Of a stretch of 64,000 bases of DNA, positions 6,159-64,000 are shown piece by piece. A program made the position numbers and the translations under genes. Each line of letters begins with the position of its first letter. Position 1 is the stretch's first letter. The notes beneath the pieces are model-generated. The model ran no database searches, was not told where the DNA came from, and was given only the letters and a program-made list of their open reading frames with translations. The stretch comes from Trichoplax adhaerens (Eukaryota > Animalia > Placozoa). The DNA is taken from the NCBI RefSeq assembly GCF_000150275.1, contig NW_002060944.1, positions 4,344,123 through 4,408,122 on the forward strand, in the 5' to 3' direction.

Positions 6159-9100
6159 TTAACTCATCCAGTCCAAGTCTTGGTCCTCATCATCAAATAA
6201 TGATGCTTCCTTAACTTCTTTTTCAGGCATTGGAGGTGGGGACTGAGTAACGGTTAAATTAATTAACGTAGATAATCAGCCAAAATTACAAAACTATAAA
6301 AGCTAAATGCCAAAATGTATCAACTTTCATACAACAAACACTAGCTAACCTCGCCTTTCGTAGAATTATCGCCAGATTCTGGAGAGCGAGAGGAAGCAGC
6401 ATCTTCCGCGTTATCCTGTTTCTCGTCAACGAATTTTTGTGAGGCAACTACATCGGAGCTAATCGCGTCAGTAATAGAAGCTTCCGTATTACTGTTGTCA
6501 TCAGAAGGTTTCTCATTTTCCTGAGTCTCCTGTTGATTTTGACTTTCAGAAACTTCCTTATGACGATCCCCTTCACTATCTTCTGGTTCATTACTACTAT
6601 CTCCATGACGGCCTTCAACTAGATTTTCTTCGGTAACCTTACCGGAAATATCACTCCCTTCAGCTACTCCTTTCTTTTCGTCTTCATTTTCTTCTTTATC
6701 ACCTTCACCATCAACTTCATTACTATCGTCCTTTTCATTANNNNNNNNNNNNNNNNNNNNNNNNNNNNNNNNNNNNNNNNNNNNNNNNNNTCCCTCATCT
6801 GAATTATTACTATTAATACCATCCTTATTCTCATCGTCTTCATCATCCTCATCATCTTCATCATCATCATCATTATCTTCATCATCGTCTTCGTCATCTT
6901 CATCTTCACTACCATTATCTAGATTTCCTGCCAGTAGTTGGACAGTTGTTTGCTGATAGAATAGAATATTCACAATAACTGTTTAACAGGAATGTTTTAA
7001 AATTTTAAAATATTTAATCATGTTATACTATTTCCTTTTAGTAGTTGATACAGTAGTACATAAATTACAGGATAGGTATCTTTCATTTGTGTTACCTTTA
7101 TAGTACGTAGAATAATTTCTATAATTGCATTCCTGGAATAAGACTGGTCTTCGCTAAAGTGTTGACTTAATGAATGAAATACCTTGTTCATGATGGCCTT
7201 AATCTATTTATCAATACCAATTACAATCTTCATAAGTGACATAAAATTTCAATATATACTTAAAACATGTTTACTACGCTCCAACTCTCCGATATCTATG
7301 CCTTTTAATTAAACTATCTTACTGATTAACAACACAACAGGCGAATAAAATACGCTTACAATTAATATTACCAAACCAGTAAATAGTACTAACAAAAATT
7401 ATCTCCATATAAATTAATTCTACCTTATTGTTTGTGTCAGTACTGCCGGATTTACTTTCAGCTACAACTTCATTCGATCTTTCATCGTCACTAGCCATCT
7501 TTCCAGCCTTGAAGCCCTCTTCATAACTTTCATTTTTAATAACTTCTTGCTCCTATAATATAAAGTTGTAAAAAACTAATTAGTATGTATCATAATACAG
7601 TTGATTCTAAAATAACTACACACTGAAGTTTCACCTCTGCTATTCTAGAGAGTTTCGCCTTTACTTCTTCCCGGAAGTCATAATGCTTATTGCACACTTC
7701 ATCGTACTATTTTAGACCGAAATTGATGATTACTTAATAATGTCAATGGTATAATACTTTAATTAATTGACCTTAATGCTTGAACCGTTACTTACTTTGT
7801 CTTGTAAATTTGTTAACTTAGAAGCCTTCTCACGTAAAGATATTAATTCGTTGTCACATTCAGCTTTTTCTACTTTTAGTTTATCATAATTCTCACTAAT
7901 AATGGTTAATTCTGCAATTCGCTCTAGCGTTTGTTTTTGTTCTGCAGTTCCAGCGTTTGTAGAGTCTTCCATTTTAGATAACGCTAATGAATTAGCATTA
8001 AGTTTACGTTCCAAATCGGTTTTCTCTTCCATTAATTTGTTATATTTATCTTTCCAACTTGCAACCATATCCGAAGATTTTTTATTCCACCTGGCTTCTA
8101 AATCTTCTTCCACCCTTGCAATCTCTTGCGTAAGGTTTGTGCTAGATTTTTGTTTTAGATATTTCTGATGAAGCTCATTTAATTCTTCATCGTGAGTAGA
8201 TCTCATCTCGTCAAGTTCTGCCTGTAATCTTTTTTTGTCAGCTGCATTTTTCTTCTTTCTATCCTCCAGTGCCTTCTCAAGTGTTTCCTTCTCCTGTTGC
8301 AAATCTGAAAGGTCATCTCGAACAGATGATAATTTTGACTCTAGGTTCTTATTCTTATTCTTGGCATCTTTTGTATCCCTTATAGCTTGCTCAAGGTTTT
8401 CCTTCAAATCAGTATTTTGTTTATCGTAATCATCCCATCGATCTTTATAAGTCTTAGCATTCGCTTCCGCTTTAGCAACCAATGATTGAAGATCAGATTC
8501 TCTTTGTTTATAGCCAATAACCTCTTTCTGAATAGATCCCAGACTATCAGTTGCTTTAGCTAACGAATTCGTTAATTCTAGTCTTTCTTGTTCTAAAGCG
8601 ATTACCCTAGACTGAGATTGAGCTGCAGTATTCTTCAAAGAGTCGTTTCTTTGTTCTAATATAACATGACTTTGTTCTACGTATCTATATGGTAATAATA
8701 AGGTAATGGAAGTATAAATCTTTACAACATATATATTAATAGTTTCTTTAAATAGTTATTGTTCGTTGCCAAGAAAGTTCTCTATTCGTCTTACTTTTGA
8801 TTTTGTTGTAGTAGTTCTGAAATTTTGTCATTTAGCGATTCAATCTTGCTATTCTTTTCCAACAATTCTTTTTTCATCTTCTCATTATCCTTTATAATAA
8901 TTAAAGGGTATTTTTGTTATATTTTAGATTAAAGAAACAGTCTAACAGTTTACTATACAGGCTCGACATAAATCAACTCTTACCTGAAAATGTTTCTGAA
9001 GACTTCTAAATAACACATCAGCTTCCATCACACCTTGGCCACCACTTTGAACAATTGCCAAATTATTCGATTGATAATTGTCAAGCTAATTACAATAAAA

Positions 9101-45398: not shown

Positions 45399-48300
45399 TT
45401 AATCTTCGCAGTGAAGAAACGGTGAATGCGAATTGCAAATATCATCCGATAGCTTGATCTTGAACTAGCAGTGAGATATCTGATTAATTATTCTATTTCC
45501 TGATATTTATTCAAACATGAATTTTATTTAGCATTAATTACATAGTCCTTACCATAGCTGGATCATATGAAAATTGATTTAGAGTTAAACAACCATCAGG
45601 GCAGCCAAGGCTATGTAAGCTTATAAGGTAAATAGTATAAAATTAGATTTGCTTCATTTTTAATACTGTTATGGCAATACAGACTACCAATACCCTTGGG
45701 TAATCAATTTATATACCTATACATTTTATCATTTTACACTATCCTGACAGGCATAATCAATATTATTACTAAGCATTTAGCAATCACTAAAACTTACTGT
45801 TTTTCATTCCAGTCCGGCGTTACATCAAACTGAAACTCTGTATGTATCAATAATTTCATGCAAAAGAGCTGAAGAAGAATCATCATCATTTTCTATAATA
45901 GCAAATATAAGTAAATTCAGAGTAAAATAATTAATATACGAGTAACAAATAGATCTTAATATCAGGAGCCTCTATTTTAAATTAAAGTCATATTTAATGA
46001 ATACCTTTCCTGGACACTGATGACTTAAGTTTTTGGCTTCATCTGGATATACTCCAGCTTCCCAAATCATATGCCGTATCAATTCCTACAAATATTTATG
46101 TGCATTACATTCATTAAGAATAATAAAAAATGAAATTCATAGAAATTTCAATTTACGAGCAATCTATATTTATGGTTGTACAACATATTTAAAACTTCTT
46201 ACTGGATCGTCATAGAATCGGAAAGGCTTAAATGTATCTGGTTCTGGAAATACATTTGGGTCCCTATGAGCTAAATGGATATTGCCAACGAGTAAATGTC
46301 CTTTTGAAATCTTATAAGTCCCTGTATAAGCTTGAATAAACATATCTTGTCTACAATAGGTATGATAAATGAAAAAGAATATTTTATTTGAACGTTAACA
46401 TGAAAGAGAATCAGGGCTTCGTTTTAAAATTAATTTATATTTATTTATAATCAACTCAAGATCACGCAACTATAAATAGATCATAGTTGGAATTCAACCA
46501 AATTTGGTTATAAAATATGTTTGATCCCTTTTCAGATCAGATAAAGATCGTAAGTTATCGATCTATCGTACTATAGCAGTACACTACACTGTAGGATTAC
46601 AGTAAGTCCAAGGATTGATATTAGTAAGATATTATTTCGATCTACTTTATGATTAATATAAGCTTCAGGCTTACTTTGCTCGACGGAATATTAATGAAAT
46701 AGGAGAAGAAGTACGAAGAACCTAGCGTCAAAGTAATAGACGGTATAAAGTTAAAATAAAGATCTTTAAAAATTAATTGAGAAATACTGCCATTTTTCGA
46801 ACCTCGGCAACAAACGATCTCAATCGTTTCATTTTGGTTAGTGCTGCTAGAGAAAGATCATTGCCTTCACCTAATGTACTTTGTATTTCTTGACGTAATT
46901 GATTTCGATCTTCATGGCTTAATATACCAATTCGTGCTGCGCAAGTTCTCATAATTGCTTCACAGCTACCAAATGCGTTAAAGCTAATATATAGTGATAT
47001 GATAAGGAATATTGCTATTACTTCGACAATCATAATTTTATTCAATATTATTTTAATCTATATTGATTCTAGGACTAGTACAGATCTCTAATATTGTACG
47101 GCTATCGAAAAAGCTGATAGTTTAATGTAATAATAGGAAACCTTTGACTACAATAGCAACTAGAATTACATTTATTCTTGTTAATTTAAAGTGATTCTAA
47201 GAATTAAAAAATATCGTCTCTAGCGAAGTTCTGAAAAACTTGATGAATTATATTGATATCAGCTATTTATAATATGCAATATTTAGATATGTAATGAGGA
47301 CCGCTATATTTAAACTTACGCTTTTACGATTATAGTATAAAACTGTATTGATGGATATACATCATCATTTATTACAACTTTTAAATTACGCTCCTGTTGA
47401 GCATAGGACGTTACGTAAGTGTAACAAGAAACAAAATGATCTTAACTAAACTACAACCGATTTTTTCCTACTGATATCTCAATAATTTTTAACAGCAGTT
47501 CTAAAATAGATAAATTAAGAATATCTCAGTTCTATCTCTCCTAATTAAGTACTCACATGATACCAAACAGAACATTTTCTTTGGCATATTCATCGGACAA
47601 GGAACATTGACGACCAGTATTTAAATAATACGGCAAATAAGTAGAATTCTCAATTTCCTTGAAAAGCTCGATATAGGTATTATAAATATCGGCACATTGT
47701 CTTTGCTTTAACAATCCAGGCACTCTATCATATTAATGGAAAAAATCATGATGTATTGTGCTAATAAGATTAAACTAATTATGAAAAGCTTTCTAAATTA
47801 TCCTCCTCTATACCCTGATAAGATGCGAATTTATAAGTAAGTACGAGATTATGTGAATATGCTATTTCTTACTTTATCTTCTGCAACGCTTGCACATACC
47901 ATTGAAAGATTGACTCAAAATTAACGGTCTTATCGATAAATAATCGACAAATTATATCACAACATAAATGTTGGATTCCATCATCCCATGATGGTTGTAT
48001 CGATTTTGAAGCAGTTGCTGTAATAAATCCAATATGAGATAGCAAACATAGTTAGATTAGATTTCTAATGAGACAAGCCCTAGAATAAAAATTTCCTGTA
48101 TATGTGTATTTTAAATTTTGAGCTTTACTTATGAGTTCACGTAAGTAAACAGCTATCATATTCATAGGAAAATAGACTAACGCTGATAAGTTTTGTTCCA
48201 TCGTTGGAAATGATCTTCAATGCTATTATAGGTTTGCTGAATGATATATTTATCTTGCATGGCAGCCAAAGTTTGCAAAATAAATGAATTTCTACTCATA

Positions 48301-49574
48301 CGATCTTTTTGGTCTGAAAATATGGAAGGACGCAAACTATCCATAAGATTATAATTGGTGATATAGTTTCCCACGCCGTCCTCTTTCGTTACCTAACAAT
48401 TACAGGATTGAATTAAATATTTTATTTCCATACGGATTAGCAATCTACGTAAAAGCTGACTTATTTGATCACTATGATCGATAACATGCATCTCTTATAC
48501 CATAGTAGTTAATGATTTAGATTAAAATTCTTGCTATTGTAAATACGGAGTGCAAAATTACTGTTAGCTGTCACTCTTGATCACATTTGAAATAAAAAAT
48601 AATACAAACCTTATCATTTTGAAATAATATACGTATAACACGATTATCGACTAAAGCAATAGCTCGAACGCCAATATTGATTCGAAAAACATTTTGTTGA
48701 TATTTTTGTTGTAACGTCTTGAAATATAAATTTCCTTGCTGTAAAATAAGCACAAAGTTAGGTTTCTAAATGTTTCTAAATTTATAGACAGCACTTGCTA
48801 GCACCTTAACTGAGATAAGATTAACGAAGAAACGTATTTCTAACTTATACAATACTACACGCGTAAAATAATAAATATTAACTTTATCGTTATACAATGC
48901 ACCGATATACAAACTATATTTGCTAAGGCTAGAATTTCGCTAAGAAAACAGTAAAATTACAAAGTGCCTAAGCGGGATTGGATGTGACTAATTTATTACC
49001 ATTTATTAAATAAAACAGGTACAGTAAATGTAGCAATTAGTAAAACATAATATCACTGGAGATTGTATCAATCAACTGTGGCGAAAATTTAACACCCGAA
49101 TTAATTATATATAATTTCCAAATTAACTTCAATCATAATCGCCTATCTTAACACTTTGCGTCATTCACTTAAAAGTCAATCAGTCAATCGTTACACTAAC
49201 AAAAAATTATAATTAACCGTAATATTACTAAAATCTCCTTGGATTATTACAATGCAACAGTGTTACTGTACAAGTATATCGTAATAAAACAATTTAACAT
49301 TATAAATAGGCACATAAATTTAAAAAATACTTCATAATTGACCTATTTTCGTAATACTACCGTTTATGACGGATTGTAATACTTCCTGTTAGTAGTTTTC
49401 CCATAAAATAGTATATATGCACATATGAAATATTTAGGCCGATTTAGTTCCGTTTACCTGTTGTAATTTAAAGGAACTGATAAATTTATGTCCATGTGAT
49501 CCAGGAATCGATTGAATAGTATCTTCTCGGCTAGACCTCCTTCTCCGGTGCAACTTTCGCGAAAGAACTTCCAT
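45399..49574 (-). CDS. CYP74-clan cytochrome P450 copy 1 (AOS/HPL/EAS-like fatty-acid hydroperoxide enzyme), catalytic motifs intact
   Basis: N-terminal IPGSHG; YFKTLQQKYQQNVFRINI; I-helix NVLFGII-FNAFGS retaining the CYP74 Asn; EVLR; PDTFKPFRF; heme loop with the CYP74-type insertion WEAGVYPDEAKNLSHQCPGK (exon 46085-46005). No N-terminal transmembrane anchor. The last exon (stop at 45399) is less certain; alternative stop at 45538. Confidence 0.88.
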
Positions 49575-53310: not shown

Positions 53311-56300
53311 CTAATCGTTTTTTTCAGTCGACTTTTGCTTTTGTTTACGTGATCTTTTCCGAATAATTACATTTTTATGGGCACTACCAAGATTGGAAGT
53401 AGTGCTATGATTGACGGTATGTATTACTGATTCATTAATATCATTGGCTTTTAAAACAGATTTTAATTCTGACATCCCGTCTTTACCTTGTCCAGATTTG
53501 TATTCTTCATTAACTTCCACGACTGGTTTGCCATCTCGGAAGCGAGTGATTGTAGTTGTTGTTTTAATAACGTAATATTGATTTCCAGCAGAAAAAAGCA
53601 ATGACCGAGCATCCGCTACGTCACGAACGGGGATGATCTTATTCTAAATCCATAAAGAAATTTCATAAGATATTTTAAACACTATTAATACAAGTACACG
53701 CATGCATCATAAAATTTTGAATTTAGATATTTACAACGGCTATAAATTGAAATGTTTTAATGTATATTTCTTCATCCGGGCAACCATGACGTCGAATTCT
53801 ATAAAATTATCAAATGGAAAGATTAGAGGAGTATTTCAGTAAATTATTACATGTGATCGTATAAACTTTAATTAATACATGACTAAACACTGATGTAAAA
53901 AGGAAAAATCTTTAACGCTATTATTCAACTATGTTATCATTATTTTAAAGTAAAATGCTGTTTTAGCTTTTATTGCGTACGTTTTGTTTATTTATTGAAA
54001 ATCACTTAAAAATACTTTTATAGCTTACTACAATAGGAATGACCTACTTTGTTGCATCCCAAGTTGGCGTTTTGTATAGAACAAATCTGCTCTGCAGCAA
54101 TAAATATAAGCTAAAGAGCTCAAGGCAATTAAAAATAGGCTGCAGTAGATAAATTTAACATGGAATATTAATTATAAGATTGAGTTAATTTGCTACCTTT
54201 AAAGTCTAAAACTTGACTTTAAAAATAAAATATAACAATATTACCTCTTCTAAACCTTCAAATTCATCGCCAAAGCATCCATATTCCCATAATAAACATC
54301 TTTTTAAAGACTATAAATTCGGTAATATTGTTAAGTAGATAATAGCCATTTTGTGCAATTATTTTTACTCATTTGAATTATTTCTTCGAAAACTAATTAG
54401 AAGTTACTTTTAATAAATTTGTAATATTTGCATTATCGTTGCAAAAAATCTTCATAAAATAATTTTGAGTGTATAAACCTACCGGATAGTTACTAAATCG
54501 AAATGGTTGAAATTCATCTGGATTATCAAACCATTTTGGATCTCTGTTTGCCCAATATAGATTGGCAAGCAATCTCTGCCCTTTACGAATATTATAAGTA
54601 GAGCCATCGACACTGATATTCATATCATTTCTATTAGGAGTATTTATATGATATAAACCATTATTGGCAATTAATGTCTATAATTAATAATTTTATATCA
54701 ACTATAGCATTTAATTTGATTTTGAAGCCCAGTAAATTTTTAAATAGTTTAATTTATATTATTATCATATTATGTTATTCTAAAATACAATTAATGTTAA
54801 GTAAAAGTTAATTATACGAAAGATATATCCAAGTTTTAGTGATGACGTGATAAATAACCCTATCTCAGCTATAAGACTAGGCGCAACTACCATACTCGTA
54901 TTAAAGGCCTATCCATGTTTCAAATACTTTAATTTACTACGATTAAATCCGTTATTCTACTGTACAAGTAAAATGTACATTTCGCTGATGTCAGTTGTTT
55001 ATGGCCTGGAGTAGTAAACCAGGGATAAAAGTAAGCTACTACATATAATATCCTAGAAATACAGCTTTATACACATAATTTAGACGATAAGATTGTAAAA
55101 TTTAATATAAGTTAAATTATCACCGCTAACTCACACTGCCCTTCCATAAATCAGGCTAACAGAAGGTGATGTACGAATAACCTGAAATACGAGATAGGCA
55201 ACAATGATCGATATCAATGAGTCGCAAAAGTGTATAATATATTAATAAATGGCATAAAATAACCCTATAATTAGATTTAATATGCAAACTTACCTCCATC
55301 ACAAATGATTTTAAGTCAGTCATATCTAACATTGCACTTTCAGATAATCCTGAGTGATTAGTCAAGACCTGGGAGGTACTTTGAATTAGATGTTCCTTGT
55401 CCTGCGGAGATAATGTAATGATTCTAGCAGCTATACTTCTCATCAATGTATTGCTTGTTCGGAATAGTTTTGCACTATATATAAATTGGATTGAAATAAT
55501 TGCATACTTTAGGTGAAAGTTTACGTCTTGTACTCTTTAGCTGCAAGACTATAACCCTATCTATAAGTCATCTAGATCTGGAGTAGATTTTATTTTAGAG
55601 TACTTGCATCATGATATAAAGAATGTTAATTTTAACAAAATCTTGAGTTAACGAATAGCATTCTCCAATTTTAGCGAGTTTCTTGAAATTAGGCGACTGT
55701 TCAATTTGTTGTAATAATACTTTGGTAGCTTTAATACCACGATTAAACGATCCAGTTTTAACGAACAGCCTAAATATAGATAGTAAAATCGATCATCTGA
55801 TGGATTAATAGATACCTTAACTGAAGCTTAAAGCTTTCCATTTTACATTATGCTACCTATAGCCAATTTAGACTTAATTAACTGCTTGATTTATATGCTA
55901 CAATAGTGCTATCCTTATTTATCAACAAGATATTGCACAGCTCAAATTAAATACTGCGATAGGTTATCTTGTTACATAGCGTTAATTGTGTGATATTTTA
56001 CTATAACTTGCTTTCCTCCTACTATTATAATTACCTTGATATCATCAGCATGGCTTCCAAGCAATCAGAAGCAGACTGAAATTCAACTCGTGTACCTAAC
56101 AATAAAGAACTGATTGCATTACTACAAAATTCTTGAATATCTCGTTCCCAGTTACCGGGTGGACCATTGCCTAGATAAACTGAGACATTGTGAAAAAGTA
56201 AATATCTGTTTTAGTCTTGAAATAATTTTGTAAAAGATGTATCAGACTTTTTACCTTCGTACTTGTCTTCCCAACGTTGAAAATGTTCTTTAATGGTATC

Positions 56301-57405
56301 ACTTACCACTTTAATAAAATAGTTAACAGGAATTAGCTGGACAACATCATTTATTAAGGATTTTCTATCCTTTTTAGCTTGATCACTCCATAAAGATGCT
56401 ATAGGATAATTTGTTAGTGACTGAACATTTTGTAGCGCTATTCCGTAGCAATCTTCTTTTGCCACCTGGTTAGAGAATATCACAACTGTATTAACAGTTT
56501 TCAATAGTAAAAAATACTTAAGTATGTCTAGATGTATTACAATTTCCATCTTATTTGTGTTTAATTTCAGTATAAATAGCGGTTATAATTATTCGTAAAG
56601 TATTGGGAAGTTCCAAAATTTACTGCTGTAAAGTTGAATTACCTAATATACTTTAGCGCAATATTTTTGGATGATCTTAAAATTTTACAATAAATTAGTC
56701 ATCTCATTTCAGTATCATTTTCCATACCTTACTACTATCAAAGAGTAATTGTGATTCTTCATTCGTTAGTATAGCTATTGCATCATAACCAAGATTAACG
56801 CGAAAAATACTTCGTTTATGCCGCTGTTGTTCTTCATGAAAGAATAAATGTCCTTTCTATTCAATGTTGGAGATGAATGAATAATTGATTGAAAGGTAGC
56901 AGAATAAGTTTAGAATGTAGTTACAAGAATATGGTTAACAAATTTTATTATGTAACGCTATATCAGCCAGGAAAGCCTGTAATCAACACAAGGCTACTGG
57001 ATATTAATTATCAGAATGGTGTTATAAAACTGAAAGTAGATTTTAAAGCACGCTGTCATCAATGGACGGGATTAAAGTACAATAAGAGAGACAAAGCTTT
57101 TAAAAACAGCAAGATTTTAAAGCACGCTGTCATCGATGGATGGGATTAAAAGTACAGTAAGGAAGATGAGGCATTTAATTGCAGCTTGATGATTCGATGA
57201 AGATATTGAAGTGAATTACTGAACATCGTTCAACCCTATACAGACTCTTGCCATATACACAACAGTATAATTAATTTTAGTAATTGAGACTTACATGTTG
57301 TAACTTTGACATACAGTACCAATTGTTAAGAGAGGTAAAAAATCCAGGAATGGTATCTCGTTTTTCTTCAGGTTTAGTACTTTCCATTTCTTTATCATTA
57401 TCCAT
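53311..57405 (-). CDS. CYP74-clan P450 copy 2, divergent: lacks heme-ligand Cys and I-helix Asn, with a long C-terminal extension
   Basis: Same exon and phase pattern as copy 1. MDNDKE...DTIPG; SIFRVNLG; VAKED; I-helix reads NILYIMI-AKLFRT; EVIR and NPDEFQPFRF intact; heme-loop exon 54310-54245 is 66 nt (SLKRCLLWEYGCFGDEFEGLEE) versus 81 nt in copies 1 and 3; final exon runs ~53644-53311. No stops or frameshifts seen in the model. Confidence 0.82.
57039..57177. repeat. ~74 bp tandem duplication in intron 1 of P450 copy 2
   Basis: GATTTTAAAGCACGCTGTCATC(A/G)ATGGA(C/T)GGGATTAAA at 57039 and 57113. Confidence 0.9.
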
Positions 57406-61434: not shown

Positions 61435-64000
61435 TTAAGCTTCGCTATCCACAGGACATTGACTATTATTATTTTCGGCTGTCATTTCATCATACTTTAA
61501 TTTGCTATTTAGAACAGCTTCCGGTAGCGAAACTGTAACCTATGATGAGAATATAGATAGAATTATATTTGCAATGTAACAATTGTCAGTAGAGGTTAAT
61601 TTTGGAATATATAACGAAAGTAAGACAGGCCTATGGTACAGTTACGAAGGAGTTAAAGTAAAGCTATATAGGGCTAAAATGGAGTAAATAACGGAGGTGT
61701 AATGGATGGATTTATTGCGTTGTTAAAATAAATGGTTCACTTACGTCTGATTTGTATTTAAATTTTTTTAGAGTGATGATCTCATCAGGAGTCCCTAAGC
61801 GTCGAATTCTATCATTAAATACACAAAAATGAATATTTGATCTTGTAAAAGTCTTATATCATGTTCATTCATGTTTTGCAAGTGAATAACGGAATTAGCT
61901 CAGAGATTCTAATATTTAAGTGGATATTATACTATCAATTATTTTAGTGGTATTAGCATAGAATTTATAATTTTAGTTTAAAAGATAAAATACAAAATAT
62001 TTACAACGTTTTACGGATACTATGCTTACTTTTTTCCTGTCCATTGAGGCTCACTACCTAGTTGATAGTCTCCTTGAAGGAGCAGATAAGCGGAAAATAG
62101 CATGATGGAAGGGATAGCAATGTTCTAGGGAATCAAGATACATTATTTTGAATATGTGTAAGATATAAAACGGAAAGTTAAAATAATTTGCTTCATTTAA
62201 TTATGTTTCATTATACGCGTAGGCGTAAAATGTTTGGATTTAAATTATTAGGAAAAGCTCGAGATATATCACAGTTATGTCATTTCTATTCGTCATTGAA
62301 AGAAAAAATCTTCAGCTCAAAATTGTATGATACTGATAATTATAATTAATAGAAGCGTACATCATTAAAGTATCGCAATAATTGGTTAAATATTTTTGAT
62401 GTTATTCGTACTCGATAATGGCTAGGTCGTAGAGCTGACTGTCGTACATTAAACTAATTTCACGTTTATTCATCGATATTTACAATAAACGGTACGTGAA
62501 TCTAGACGAGTAGCTAAGCTAGTGATCGAAGATGATTCGATTATTGTAGCTAAAGTGAGGGTATATCATTACACAAATAAGAAGAGATAGAAATTTAATA
62601 AGTTACGATAATCTCGAAATGATTAATCTAATAAGAGTTAAATTAGTCTAGCATAAATCTGAAGCAAAGTAGAATACTTTCGGACATCACAAGTAATTTC
62701 ATTTAGAGGAAGAAAATATAAAATTTATTTAATACTGTCCAATGAGAAATTTACTTACCCGACCAGGACATTGATGGGTCTTTTCACACTGATCCTTAGA
62801 GAAAGGCCCAGCTTCCCAGTACAAATAATTTTTAAGATCCTGTTTAAAAGTAAATTGACAAAATCTTCAAATTTCATGATTGATATGGAAGAATACTGTA
62901 CCTATAATCCTTAACTACAGCTAAAAAGGTAGTCTATATAATTAAGTGAGATATAAATCTTACCGGATTATTAAAAAATCGCAGTGCTTGAAAGGTAAGC
63001 GGATCATCGAATACTCTAGTATCTCGGTGTGCCCAAAAGAGATTAGCTACCATTAATTTGCCTTTTGGAATCTTGTAAGTTCCGGTATTAGATTTAATCA
63101 TTAAATCTTCACTAAAAGATAGGCAAAAGAATTAGACTAAAAGTAGAGAATGTGCGGTACAGTAACTTGCTAAATAACGATATTTTCATCATAAGTATAA
63201 TAATTATAACTATGTATTTGGTGTGGATCAAGACATGTCCACTAATATTTTCCTGTATGTTATAGTTTGGACTGTATGTGCCTCTATACTACTGAAGCTG
63301 ATTAAATTTTTTGACTACTTTAGGCAATCGAATATTAAAAAGCAATTTAAAACTTGCTAAAAAATGAAATAGTCAATTAGGTATCCCCTTCAAAAGGGAA
63401 ATACTTACACTGCTCGTCCAAAAATTAAATTCACGGGTGAAGACATTCTAAGATTCTGTAATTTGATAGAATATCATACTGTTAGTTTAAGAAGAGAATA
63501 GTTTAATTTTGTAACCATCATTATCTTGCTACTATTTGCTGTATCCAGTTTACTACAATAGTATATGAACTATATGGGTTAAGGATGCCAATTCTGGAAT
63601 AGTATTTAGTTATGATTTATTTTTGTTTGCCACAAACTCAACAATGGATAATCTAAAACTAAATAGTTAAATTTTTCAATATTAATTCATGACGTATTTT
63701 TCTTTCCCGTTTTACTCAATTCTAACTCCAATTCTCATTTCAAACAATTAAAAGATCATGTAGAGGGATAATTGTACTTTCATCTTAACTTAATATCATA
63801 GATAAATATATTATTGTTTGATGTGAACGGAGAGCTGAATATGGTATTTTAATGAAATTGTATCCGTCTATGCGTACTTTGTCTTAGCAAAATATTTTCG
63901 TTGATAATTAAGAGGAGAAGATCAAGTAATCATTTTAATTTTTCTTTTACTCACTTCCAAAACAAATGAATGGAGCTTTCTCATTTGACACAAAGCTTGA
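61435..64000 (-). CDS. CYP74-clan P450 copy 3, 3' part only (5' end beyond the right edge), heme Cys intact
   Basis: Exons give SFVLE-NLRMSSPV (ExxR), AHRDTRVFDDPLTFQALRF, WEAGPFSKDQCEKTHQCPGR (62839-62759), NIAIPSIMLF...PQWTGK, IRRLGTPDE, and a last exon ending QCPVDSEA* with stop at 61435-61437. Confidence 0.85.

Follow-up and report, generated by a model that had tools for sequence, protein, structure and literature searches.

A conserved CYP74-clan P450 gene without the heme-thiolate cysteine in the placozoan Trichoplax adhaerens: a candidate pseudo-enzyme

Cytochromes P450 are defined by their axial cysteine, and the CYP74 clan among them is oxygen- and reductase-independent. In more than 99.5% of P450 homologues this cysteine is kept (PMC11703216). 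The non-canonical CYPs, whose axial position carries a different residue or none, comprise 20 families with Ser, Sec, putative Glu or Arg ligands or no ligand at all, and those reported are all bacterial (PMC11703216). Some P450 homologues are heme-free and have taken on non-catalytic roles: proteins of the PDGAF/EryCII and DesVIII type show the P450 fold with conserved I, J, K, K' and L helices, have no axial cysteine and serve as non-catalytic partners or chaperones (PMC3391682). They belong to an unrelated bacterial lineage, and antibiotic gene clusters encode them together with the glycosyltransferases that are their partners. The CYP74 clan includes animal members (the CYP440/CYP443 epoxyalcohol synthases and coral ApAOS) as well as plant AOS, HPL and DES, and in CYP74s the I-helix Asn participates in homolytic O−O cleavage (PMC8124189). 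The occurrence of clan 74 in Trichoplax was reported by Nelson et al. 2013, as related in a passage of PMC4076195.

The window analysed here, a stretch of 64,000 nucleotides of T. adhaerens contig NW_002060944.1, contains part of a tandem array of four CYP74-clan P450 genes (copies 1–4) with pairwise identities of 31–40%. Coordinates are collected in Table 1. Copy 3 continues beyond the window end to about window-equivalent position 66449 (an extent given without a located exon 1), and copy 4, with the I-helix motif FNAYGG, is located close by outside the window. Both FN..G and HQCPG(K/R) are present in three of the four paralogues, namely copies 1, 3 and 4. All nine introns of copy 2 match those of these copies in position and phase, indicating CYP74-clan descent, and a 129-nt exon 2 is common to all four. 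Copy 2 has its exon structure, the ERR triad and the long Cys loop region in common with three tandem paralogues bearing the clan hallmarks. It differs from the clan as follows: the cysteinyl ligand and the groove Asn, on which the definition of the catalysis rests, are missing, the Cys loop is 5–6 residues shorter, and S-P-S-V takes the place of the PPV motif.

Table 1. Features of the CYP74-clan cluster in the window (window positions).
Feature	Position	Strand	Remarks
Copy 1	45794..49574	(-)	intact paralogue, FNAFGS and HQCPGK
Copy 2 gene, ATG to stop	54044..57405	(-)	10 exons, CDS 1287 nt, 428 aa
Copy 2 exon 1	57295..57405	(-)	ATG at 57405; homologous to copy 1 exon 1 (D-T-I..P-G motif)
Copy 2 exon 2	56728..56856	(-)	exon model
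Copy 2 exon 3	56255..56465	(-)	211 nt
Copy 2 exon 4	56035..56170	(-)	exon model and orthologue comparison
Copy 2 exon 5	55608..55769	(-)	exon model and orthologue comparison
Copy 2 intron 5 donor, GC (GCAAGT)	55606..55607	(-)	same phase-2 site is GT in copies 1, 3, 4 and both orthologues
Copy 2 exon 6	55294..55474	(-)	I-helix through Glu of ExxR
Copy 2 I-helix groove, AKLFRT	55456..55473	(-)	FN(A/Y)(F/Y)G in copies 1, 3, 4
Copy 2 exon 7	55135..55181	(-)	V-I-R of ExxR; S-P-S-V replacing PPV motif
Copy 2 exon 8	54483..54630	(-)	K'-helix and PERF region, PFRF at 54506-54495
Copy 2 exon 9	54245..54310	(-)	heme-loop exon, 22 codons, without axial Cys; WEYG and acidic E-x-E-G-L-E
Copy 2 intron 9	54140..54244	(-)	105 nt, without Cys-loop micro-exon
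Copy 2 exon 10	54044..54139	(-)	L-helix to stop; conserved lineage-specific Cys, F-(N/Y)-C-L-E
Copy 3	62026..64000	(-)	intact paralogue, FNYYGG and HQCPGR

The coding sequence of copy 2 is open throughout, with no internal stops or frameshifts and all exon phases intact. Eight of its nine donors are GT and one is GC; every acceptor is AG. A first-pass annotation of the sequence had placed the gene at 54048-55620. A real gene lies there, its extent had been taken too small, and the actual span with ten exons is 57405-54044. The accompanying claim that ExxR, the PERF region and the exon phases are kept without stops was borne out: the ERR triad is preserved as E-V-I-R spanning exons 6 and 7 and as P-F-R-F in exon 8, both also kept in the orthologue described below. 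In exon 3 the block P-(I/A)-A-S-L is specific to this lineage, the paralogues reading R-P-S-I-F.

Exons were searched singly, and joined coding sequences entered only the alignment, the dN/dS calculation and a small tree. The family match rests with exon 8, which covers positions 350–390 of PF00067 at 39.7 bits (cut-off 22.8; E 3.6e-10), the other exons singly lacking the length or the similarity needed for a score. The heme-loop exons alone gave no match in Pfam, and a search with a 27-column heme-loop profile, too short for the purpose, returned chance matches only. On a different scaffold, exon 8 weakly matched a sequence that proved to be an ordinary P450 with PERW, not of clan 74. From the protein representatives, exon 3 retrieved only two fragments, both short, and no placozoan protein of full length.

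In the three paralogues the heme-loop exon comprises 27 codons (46085-46005 in copy 1, 62839-62759 in copy 3, and copy 4) and always ends in HQCPG(K/R). The corresponding exon 9 of copy 2 is five codons shorter and exon 10 one codon shorter; neither the 22-codon exon nor its counterpart in the orthologue contains the axial Cys of the C-x-G Cys pocket. The paralogues have the long loop, in which the Cys follows the PERF Phe by 28 residues; in copy 2 it is reduced by 5+1 residues. The contrast of 22 and 27 codons drawn in the first-pass annotation, with no QCPG(K/R) in 54310-54245, agrees with these exons. Its more specific statement that exactly QCPG(K/R) is missing is right as to a shorter, Cys-less loop, whereas the exact residues deleted depend on the alignment; comparison with the nine-residue heme-loop insertion of CYP74 does not fix the deletion site within the loop. 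As had also been proposed, neither read-through nor the sequence ahead of the next acceptor supplies a cysteine: beyond the exon 9 donor the frame stays open for 12 codons, none of them for Cys, and then meets a stop, and a three-frame scan from exon 8 to the stop found no spliceable C-x-G/A in copy 2 or in the orthologue. A Cys-loop micro-exon is ruled out by the same scan.

The second loss concerns the I-helix. The replacement of FNAFGS in copy 1 by AKLFRT in copy 2, noticed at first reading, is confirmed by copies 3 and 4, which read FNYYGG and FNAYGG. The catalytic Asn is changed to Lys and the conserved Gly to Arg, so that the CYP74 feature F-N-x-x-G is absent. The assignment of this position is supported by a five-sequence profile of exon 6, whose top PDB match is Arabidopsis AOS (CYP74A, 2RCH) and in which the FN of the paralogues aligns with FNTWGG of that enzyme; exon 6 alone gave no match in the PDB. 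With both the thiolate ligand and the O−O-cleaving Asn lost, CYP74-type hydroperoxide rearrangement would not be expected of copy 2, and we consider the absence of this catalysis quite likely.

Orthologues were drawn from genomic contigs of two other wild placozoans (Logan SRR30664516/15 and a marine-biofilm metagenome). The Logan orthologue (L005 and L006) has exons 3–10 of equal length to those of copy 2 (211, 136, 162, 181, 47, 148, 66 and 96 nt), AG/GT at all introns of these exons and the stop at the same codon; exons 1–2 lie outside the orthologous contigs, and the comparison spans exons 3–10. Its heme exon (L005:2170-2235) likewise comprises 22 codons without a Cys and is the sole one covered in another lineage. 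The biofilm orthologue (L010/L011) covers exons 4–6, and AKLFRT is identical in both. Downstream, an exon of the neighbouring gene is conserved in synteny, and the copy-4 orthologue has kept its 27-codon heme exon with HQCPGK. At 32 comparable positions copy 2 deviates from a residue that copies 1, 3 and 4 all share; at 27 of these the orthologue carries the identical change, which marks them as fixed, conserved changes and not as decay. Since the same Cys-less state occurs in an independent genome, chance can be dismissed.

Copy 2 and the Logan orthologue share 79% of amino acids and 77% of nucleotides. With dN 0.127 and dS 1.58, ω is about 0.08, an approximate value as dS is near saturation; pN/pS is 0.18 (bootstrap interval 0.13–0.23), and the distribution of synonymous and non-synonymous differences is highly skewed (Fisher test, p ~3e-56). 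The value expected of a relaxed pseudogene, in comparison, is near 1. Independently of the present genome, the Logan (L005) and biofilm (L010) sequences give ω 0.08, and the three-taxon branches 0.09, 0.14 and 0.05, the first leading to this genome. Constraint is strong in the ERR triad, the I-helix and exon 3 (90% amino acid identity, pN/pS 0.08), and lowest in the heme-loop exon with pN/pS 0.5, which fits expectation if heme ligation there has been lost. The copy-4 orthologue comparison, serving as a control, gave ω 0.17–0.21; copy 4 is therefore no more constrained than copy 2. The exons of copy 2 and its orthologue are alignable and the introns no longer so. Together with the shared Cys-less exon and the low ω, this indicates an old loss in a gene under selection, and speaks against a pseudogene as well as against faulty assembly or splicing. 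The genomic data hence demonstrate the gene structure, the catalytic losses and how old they are, and that purifying selection acts on the gene; copy 2 is very probably a real, selected, Cys-less gene of its lineage.

These results also answer what the first-pass annotation had named as fatal to its proposal of a fold selected after both catalytic losses. A micro-exon restoring QCxG, an assembly error and a dN/dS near 1 are largely excluded at the DNA level, and the candidate pseudo-enzyme gains support from a divergent orthologue that is Cys-less, carries AKLFRT and has equal exon lengths. The opposite view would make copy 2 an old pseudogene of the ordinary kind, or the product of faulty assembly or annotation in which a Cys-bearing exon was missed. 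The loss of the invariant Cys as well as of the catalytic Asn and the one non-canonical donor might suggest this, yet it deserves next to no credence in view of the same structure in an independent assembly, the equal exon lengths, the ω of 0.08, the unalignable introns and the lack, in both species, of any C-x-G-coding segment from exon 8 to the stop.

The best explanation, to which we assign a probability of roughly 0.6, is a selected, old, Cys-less and probably heme-free pseudo-enzyme of P450 fold. Copy 2 would have arisen long ago by tandem duplication inside the four-gene cluster of CYP74-clan (oxylipin) P450s. The Cys loop would then have been shortened by 5+1 codons, which removed the heme-thiolate Cys pocket, and in the I-helix the catalytic Asn would have given way to Lys and a neighbouring Gly to Arg; since then the gene appears to have been held nearly unchanged in at least two, probably three, placozoan lineages. 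Bulky basic side chains are predicted to occupy the I-helix groove, with an acidic, shortened proximal loop below, and judged from the sequence the protein has most likely given up normal heme binding. It may then bind or carry oxylipins or fatty-acid hydroperoxides, or alternatively pair with, or regulate, lipoxygenases or the active paralogues. Such roles, like those of oxylipin binder, sensor or regulator of the flanking paralogues put forward in the first-pass annotation, are conjectural. Lipoxygenase genes are found in the same genome, which makes substrates and partners for copy 2 plausible. The likeness to PDGAF is meant as a functional analogy only; copy 2 clearly originated inside the placozoan clan-74 cluster and would not be expected to belong to that group.

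A hemoprotein with altered chemistry or a sensing role is the alternative that survives best, although we hold it to be unlikely. Here the carboxylate of D-E or E-x-E-G-L-E, or the Tyr of WEYG, would replace the thiolate as axial ligand. Putative Glu, Arg and Ser ligands are known from bacterial non-canonical CYPs, and one Ser-ligated structure contains heme (PMC11703216); in contrast to these, copy 2 is metazoan and of the CYP74 clan. The acidic loop and the Tyr are conserved in the copy 2 lineage, a gap-free count back from the L-helix brings a conserved Glu to where the Cys would be, and the ERR triad and I-helix are strongly constrained. The gained WEYG Tyr is also the sole point at which coral catalase-related AOS becomes relevant, a Tyr-ligated, non-thiolate heme protein acting on fatty-acid hydroperoxides in early-branching animals. 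As that enzyme has a catalase fold and no homology to copy 2, it offers a functional analogy for this alternative. Against it stand the heme-loop exon as the least constrained part of the gene and the Lys and Arg in place of Asn and Gly in the groove overlying the heme. Further, the His two residues before the Cys, the propionate-binding position in P450s, is gone along with the Cys. The conserved Tyr, the loop carboxylates or the L-helix Cys might in principle ligate heme, and the balance tips towards a heme-free protein.

The pseudo-enzyme reading also has to account for the GC donor of intron 5, which does not appear in the first-pass annotation. If it were unused in this genome, the transcript would be frameshifted, as the GT four bases downstream shifts the frame and runs into a stop. 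One could therefore suppose that the allele died recently here, the change from GT to GC blocking exon-5 splicing, and that the gene is functional in the orthologues elsewhere, where, as in copies 1, 3 and 4, the site is GT. This is improbable: no further lesion occurs across the 1287 nt, and the branch to this genome has ω 0.09. Moreover, GCAAGT fits the usual consensus of GC donors, and GC-AG is the commonest class of non-canonical introns. The copy 2 allele of this genome is likely to be still functional by way of the GC donor.

Two cysteines had been proposed as new thiolate ligands. The one in YGCFG falls away, the position being Leu in the orthologue. The other, in FNCLE of exon 10, is indeed conserved, as FYCLE, and copies 1, 3 and 4 have no Cys in the corresponding column; it follows the PERF Phe by 31 residues, compared with 28 for the canonical Cys. 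It could thus be argued that heme-thiolate is retained and copy 2 still a P450 enzyme. However, exon 10 is homologous to the paralogues throughout, which places this Cys within the L-helix, about nine residues from its start. Its surroundings do not resemble a Cys pocket, as the basic residue at −2 and the Gly at +2 are missing, and the catalytic Asn is lost too, so that such a ligand is very improbable.

A literature search for P450s without the Cys in animals or in the CYP74 clan returned no paper, which does not prove that there is none. To our knowledge, natural exceptions to the axial Cys are so far bacterial only, comprising the glycosyltransferase-activating homologues and about 20 non-canonical CYP families. 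The bolder view that copy 2 represents an animal's first naturally non-thiolate P450 lineage, with a carboxylate or tyrosinate heme (or heme-free hydroperoxide binding) and new oxylipin chemistry or sensing, long kept beside three canonical paralogues, is distinctly unlikely. As a pseudo-enzyme, copy 2 would be an animal exception of independent origin inside the CYP74 clan and under purifying selection, with the three adjoining canonical paralogues as built-in controls. For annotation it is a warning, as copy 2 should be listed neither as a pseudogene nor as an active AOS-like enzyme. It raises the questions of what role a P450 fold may take after giving up heme-thiolate chemistry, how a tandem duplicate becomes a pseudo-enzyme, and how oxylipin metabolism is laid out in one of the simplest animals.

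Exon models of all four copies were built from coordinates, and splice flanks and reading frames were verified. Copy 2, the paralogue without the heme-thiolate cysteine, has ten exons and a coding sequence of 1287 nt with no internal stop. All nine of its introns match those of copies 1, 3 and 4 in position and phase, and only one codon separates its final exon from the longer one of copy 3. Both ExxR and PFRF are preserved; exon 8 scores 39.7 bits against the Pfam P450 model, higher than the same exon in the other three copies. The models thus bear out the earlier description of a stop-free gene with preserved exon phases and ExxR/PERF region. The exon-5 donor is GC (GCAAGT) in copy 2 and GT in all other copies; splicing at the following GT would cause a frameshift.

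A search of the 105.6-Mb assembly (1414 contigs) with the PERF exon of copy 2 gave four related exons in one minus-strand tandem array with a spacing of about 8-10 kb. The CYP74-clan cluster therefore comprises four genes, not three: copies 1-3 lie within the window, copy 3 extending beyond its end, and copy 4 follows just past it. By eye, no exon 1 of copy 3 was located upstream of its exon 2 (window-equivalent 66450-67000, on L001, which continues this genome past the window end). A fifth, weak match elsewhere belongs to an ordinary P450 and was placed outside the cluster. The window is AT-rich and the introns of its genes are short. About 60 full-length P450 matches on contigs C1398, C1404, C1410, C1411 and C1412 each consist of one stop-free open frame about 500 aa long, and many stand in tandem arrays. 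They form a large expansion of P450 genes that appear to lack introns, unlike the ten-exon clan-74 genes. Clan 74 in Trichoplax is itself already described, by Nelson et al. 2013 as cited in PMC4076195.

Coordinates of the features discussed (window positions)
Feature	Position	Strand	Remarks
Copy 2	57405-54044	minus	GC donor at exon 5
Copy 2, heme-loop exon (exon 9)	54310-54245	minus	22 codons
Copy 4	73086-77664 (window-equivalent; L002:2086-6664; G000:C1413 about 4417208-4421786)	minus	intact, FNAYGG and HQCPGK
Exon of the downstream neighbour	53726-53804	minus	R-R-H-G-C-P-D-E-E-I-Y-I-K..; 77% identical to L006:995-1073
Assembly gap	6741-6790		run of 50 N, far from copy 2

The heme-loop exon of copies 1, 3 and 4 runs to 27 codons and ends in HQCPG(K/R), so that the shorter, Cys-less exon of copy 2 noted in the first-pass annotation stands, also against copy 4. 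The loop is 5+1 residues shorter, but the statement that exactly QCPG(K/R) is missing reflects one alignment among several. Neither read-through of the donor nor a three-frame scan from exon 8 to the stop revealed a usable C-x-G, in agreement with the view that no micro-exon restores the cysteine. The I-helix groove of copy 2 likewise carries AKLFRT in place of the FNAFGS, FNYYGG and FNAYGG of its paralogues. With the profile of this exon, the best match among solved structures was Arabidopsis allene oxide synthase (CYP74A; 2RCH, 2RCM; E 0.035, full-length alignment), whose FNTWGG aligns with the FN of the paralogues. The conserved Asn of the groove is described as participating in the homolytic O−O cleavage that starts CYP74 catalysis (PMC8124189).

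An exon-3 search of protein representatives led, via a 45-aa fragment, to the 2459-nt genomic Logan contig L005 (SRR30664516); L006, from the sister run, extends beyond the stop codon of the same orthologue. Only exons align between window and L005 (72-81% identity), the introns being unalignable. Over exons 3-10, the range covered by this comparison, exon lengths are equal, all junctions are AG/GT, including a GT donor at exon 5, and the stop falls at the identical codon. The heme exon of this one other lineage again has 22 codons without Cys, together with AKLFRT. Orthology is supported by synteny, since the exon of the neighbouring gene is conserved downstream. A third lineage (contigs L010/L011, exons 4-6) from a marine-biofilm metagenome (ERZ23499115, traced to PMC6355793) also carries AKLFRT and the GT donor, while the copy-4 orthologue keeps the 27-codon exon with HQCPGK. 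In that sample, dS to this genome is about 0.7 for the copy-4 contigs L007/L008 and about 1.7 for L010, pointing either to two placozoan species or to strongly gene-specific synonymous rates.

Copy 2 and the Logan orthologue share 79% amino acid identity over 348 codons, with dN 0.127, dS 1.58 and omega (dN/dS) 0.08, a value that is approximate due to near saturation of dS, yet far below the value near 1 of an ordinary pseudogene. The pN/pS ratio is 0.18 (bootstrap interval 0.13-0.23; Fisher p ~3e-56). L010 against L005, a pair independent of this genome, likewise gives 0.08 (exons 4-6), and the branch to this genome 0.09 in three-taxon estimates. As a control, the copy-4 orthologue comparison gave 0.17-0.21, hence constraint no stronger than on copy 2, with the caveat that the two species pairs may not be the same. 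Because lineages with near-saturated synonymous sites share the same loss of Cys and Asn, the loss is old and predates their split. Copy 2 has been under purifying selection ever since.

Paralogue identities are 31-40%, copy 2 being the most divergent (31-34%) and having the longest stem branch in the unrooted tree (0.99, others 0.57-0.80). Copies 1, 3 and 4 all agree in 106 columns, 64 of which copy 2 retains; where changed columns could be compared, 27 of 32 are identical in the orthologue. Among the fixed changes, exon 3 carries P-x-A-S-L for R-P-S-I-F, the I-helix has A-K for F-N and R for G, AHRD has N for its H, WEAG has Y for its A, and HQCPG is gone. Conservation is among the highest in the I-helix groove and exon 3, and constraint is weakest in the heme-loop exon (pN/pS 0.5 over its 22 codons). 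In this pattern, former active-site elements changed in a burst and were then conserved, which is consistent with a changed function rather than decay.

For hydroperoxide O−O cleavage, CYP74 enzymes require a heme with thiolate ligation as well as the Asn of the groove; with both gone, such chemistry is very unlikely for copy 2. Long basic Lys and Arg side chains would occupy the groove that in P450s overlies the heme, the residue two positions before the Cys is lost, and the shortened proximal loop is acidic. From these features we infer that copy 2 no longer binds heme normally. A hemoprotein with a non-thiolate ligand is unlikely, but of the alternatives it survives best: counting back gap-free from the L-helix, a conserved Glu occupies the Cys position, and D-E, E-x-E-G-L-E and the new Tyr of WEYG are conserved. 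Slightly less probable is that the GC donor recently killed the allele of this genome, as GCAAGT is the usual form of a GC donor and copy 2 carries no further lesion. Of the two cysteines suggested earlier as new ligands, that of YGCFG is Leu in the orthologue and drops out. That of F-(N/Y)-C-L-E is lineage-specific and conserved, and lies 31 residues from PERF, near the canonical 28; however, exon 10 is homologous end to end with those of the paralogues, which places it deep in the L-helix, among residues unlike a Cys pocket, and ligation by it is highly improbable. An old pseudogene or artefact is contradicted by orthologue structure and omega and can practically be dismissed.

In a survey, the Cys was present in more than 99.5% of P450 homologues; about 20 bacterial families lack it, some binding heme via another ligand (PMC11703216). 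Copy 2 joins the known Cys-less P450 homologues; our incomplete coverage of the literature yielded no report of a Cys-less CYP74-clan member or a conserved Cys-less animal P450. Heme-free bacterial homologues that activate glycosyltransferases (PMC3391682) offer a precedent for a P450 fold with another role, as proposed here. Copy 2 would then be a P450-fold pseudo-enzyme whose remodelled pocket or surface may bind lipid hydroperoxides or oxylipins. Alternatively, it may be a partner of the active paralogues or of lipoxygenases, genes for which occur at at least four loci in this genome. Plant AOS is reported to work together with lipoxygenase and allene oxide cyclase as part of complexes (PMC6411374, PMC6627107); purely by analogy, a role of copy 2 as a non-catalytic complex subunit is conceivable.
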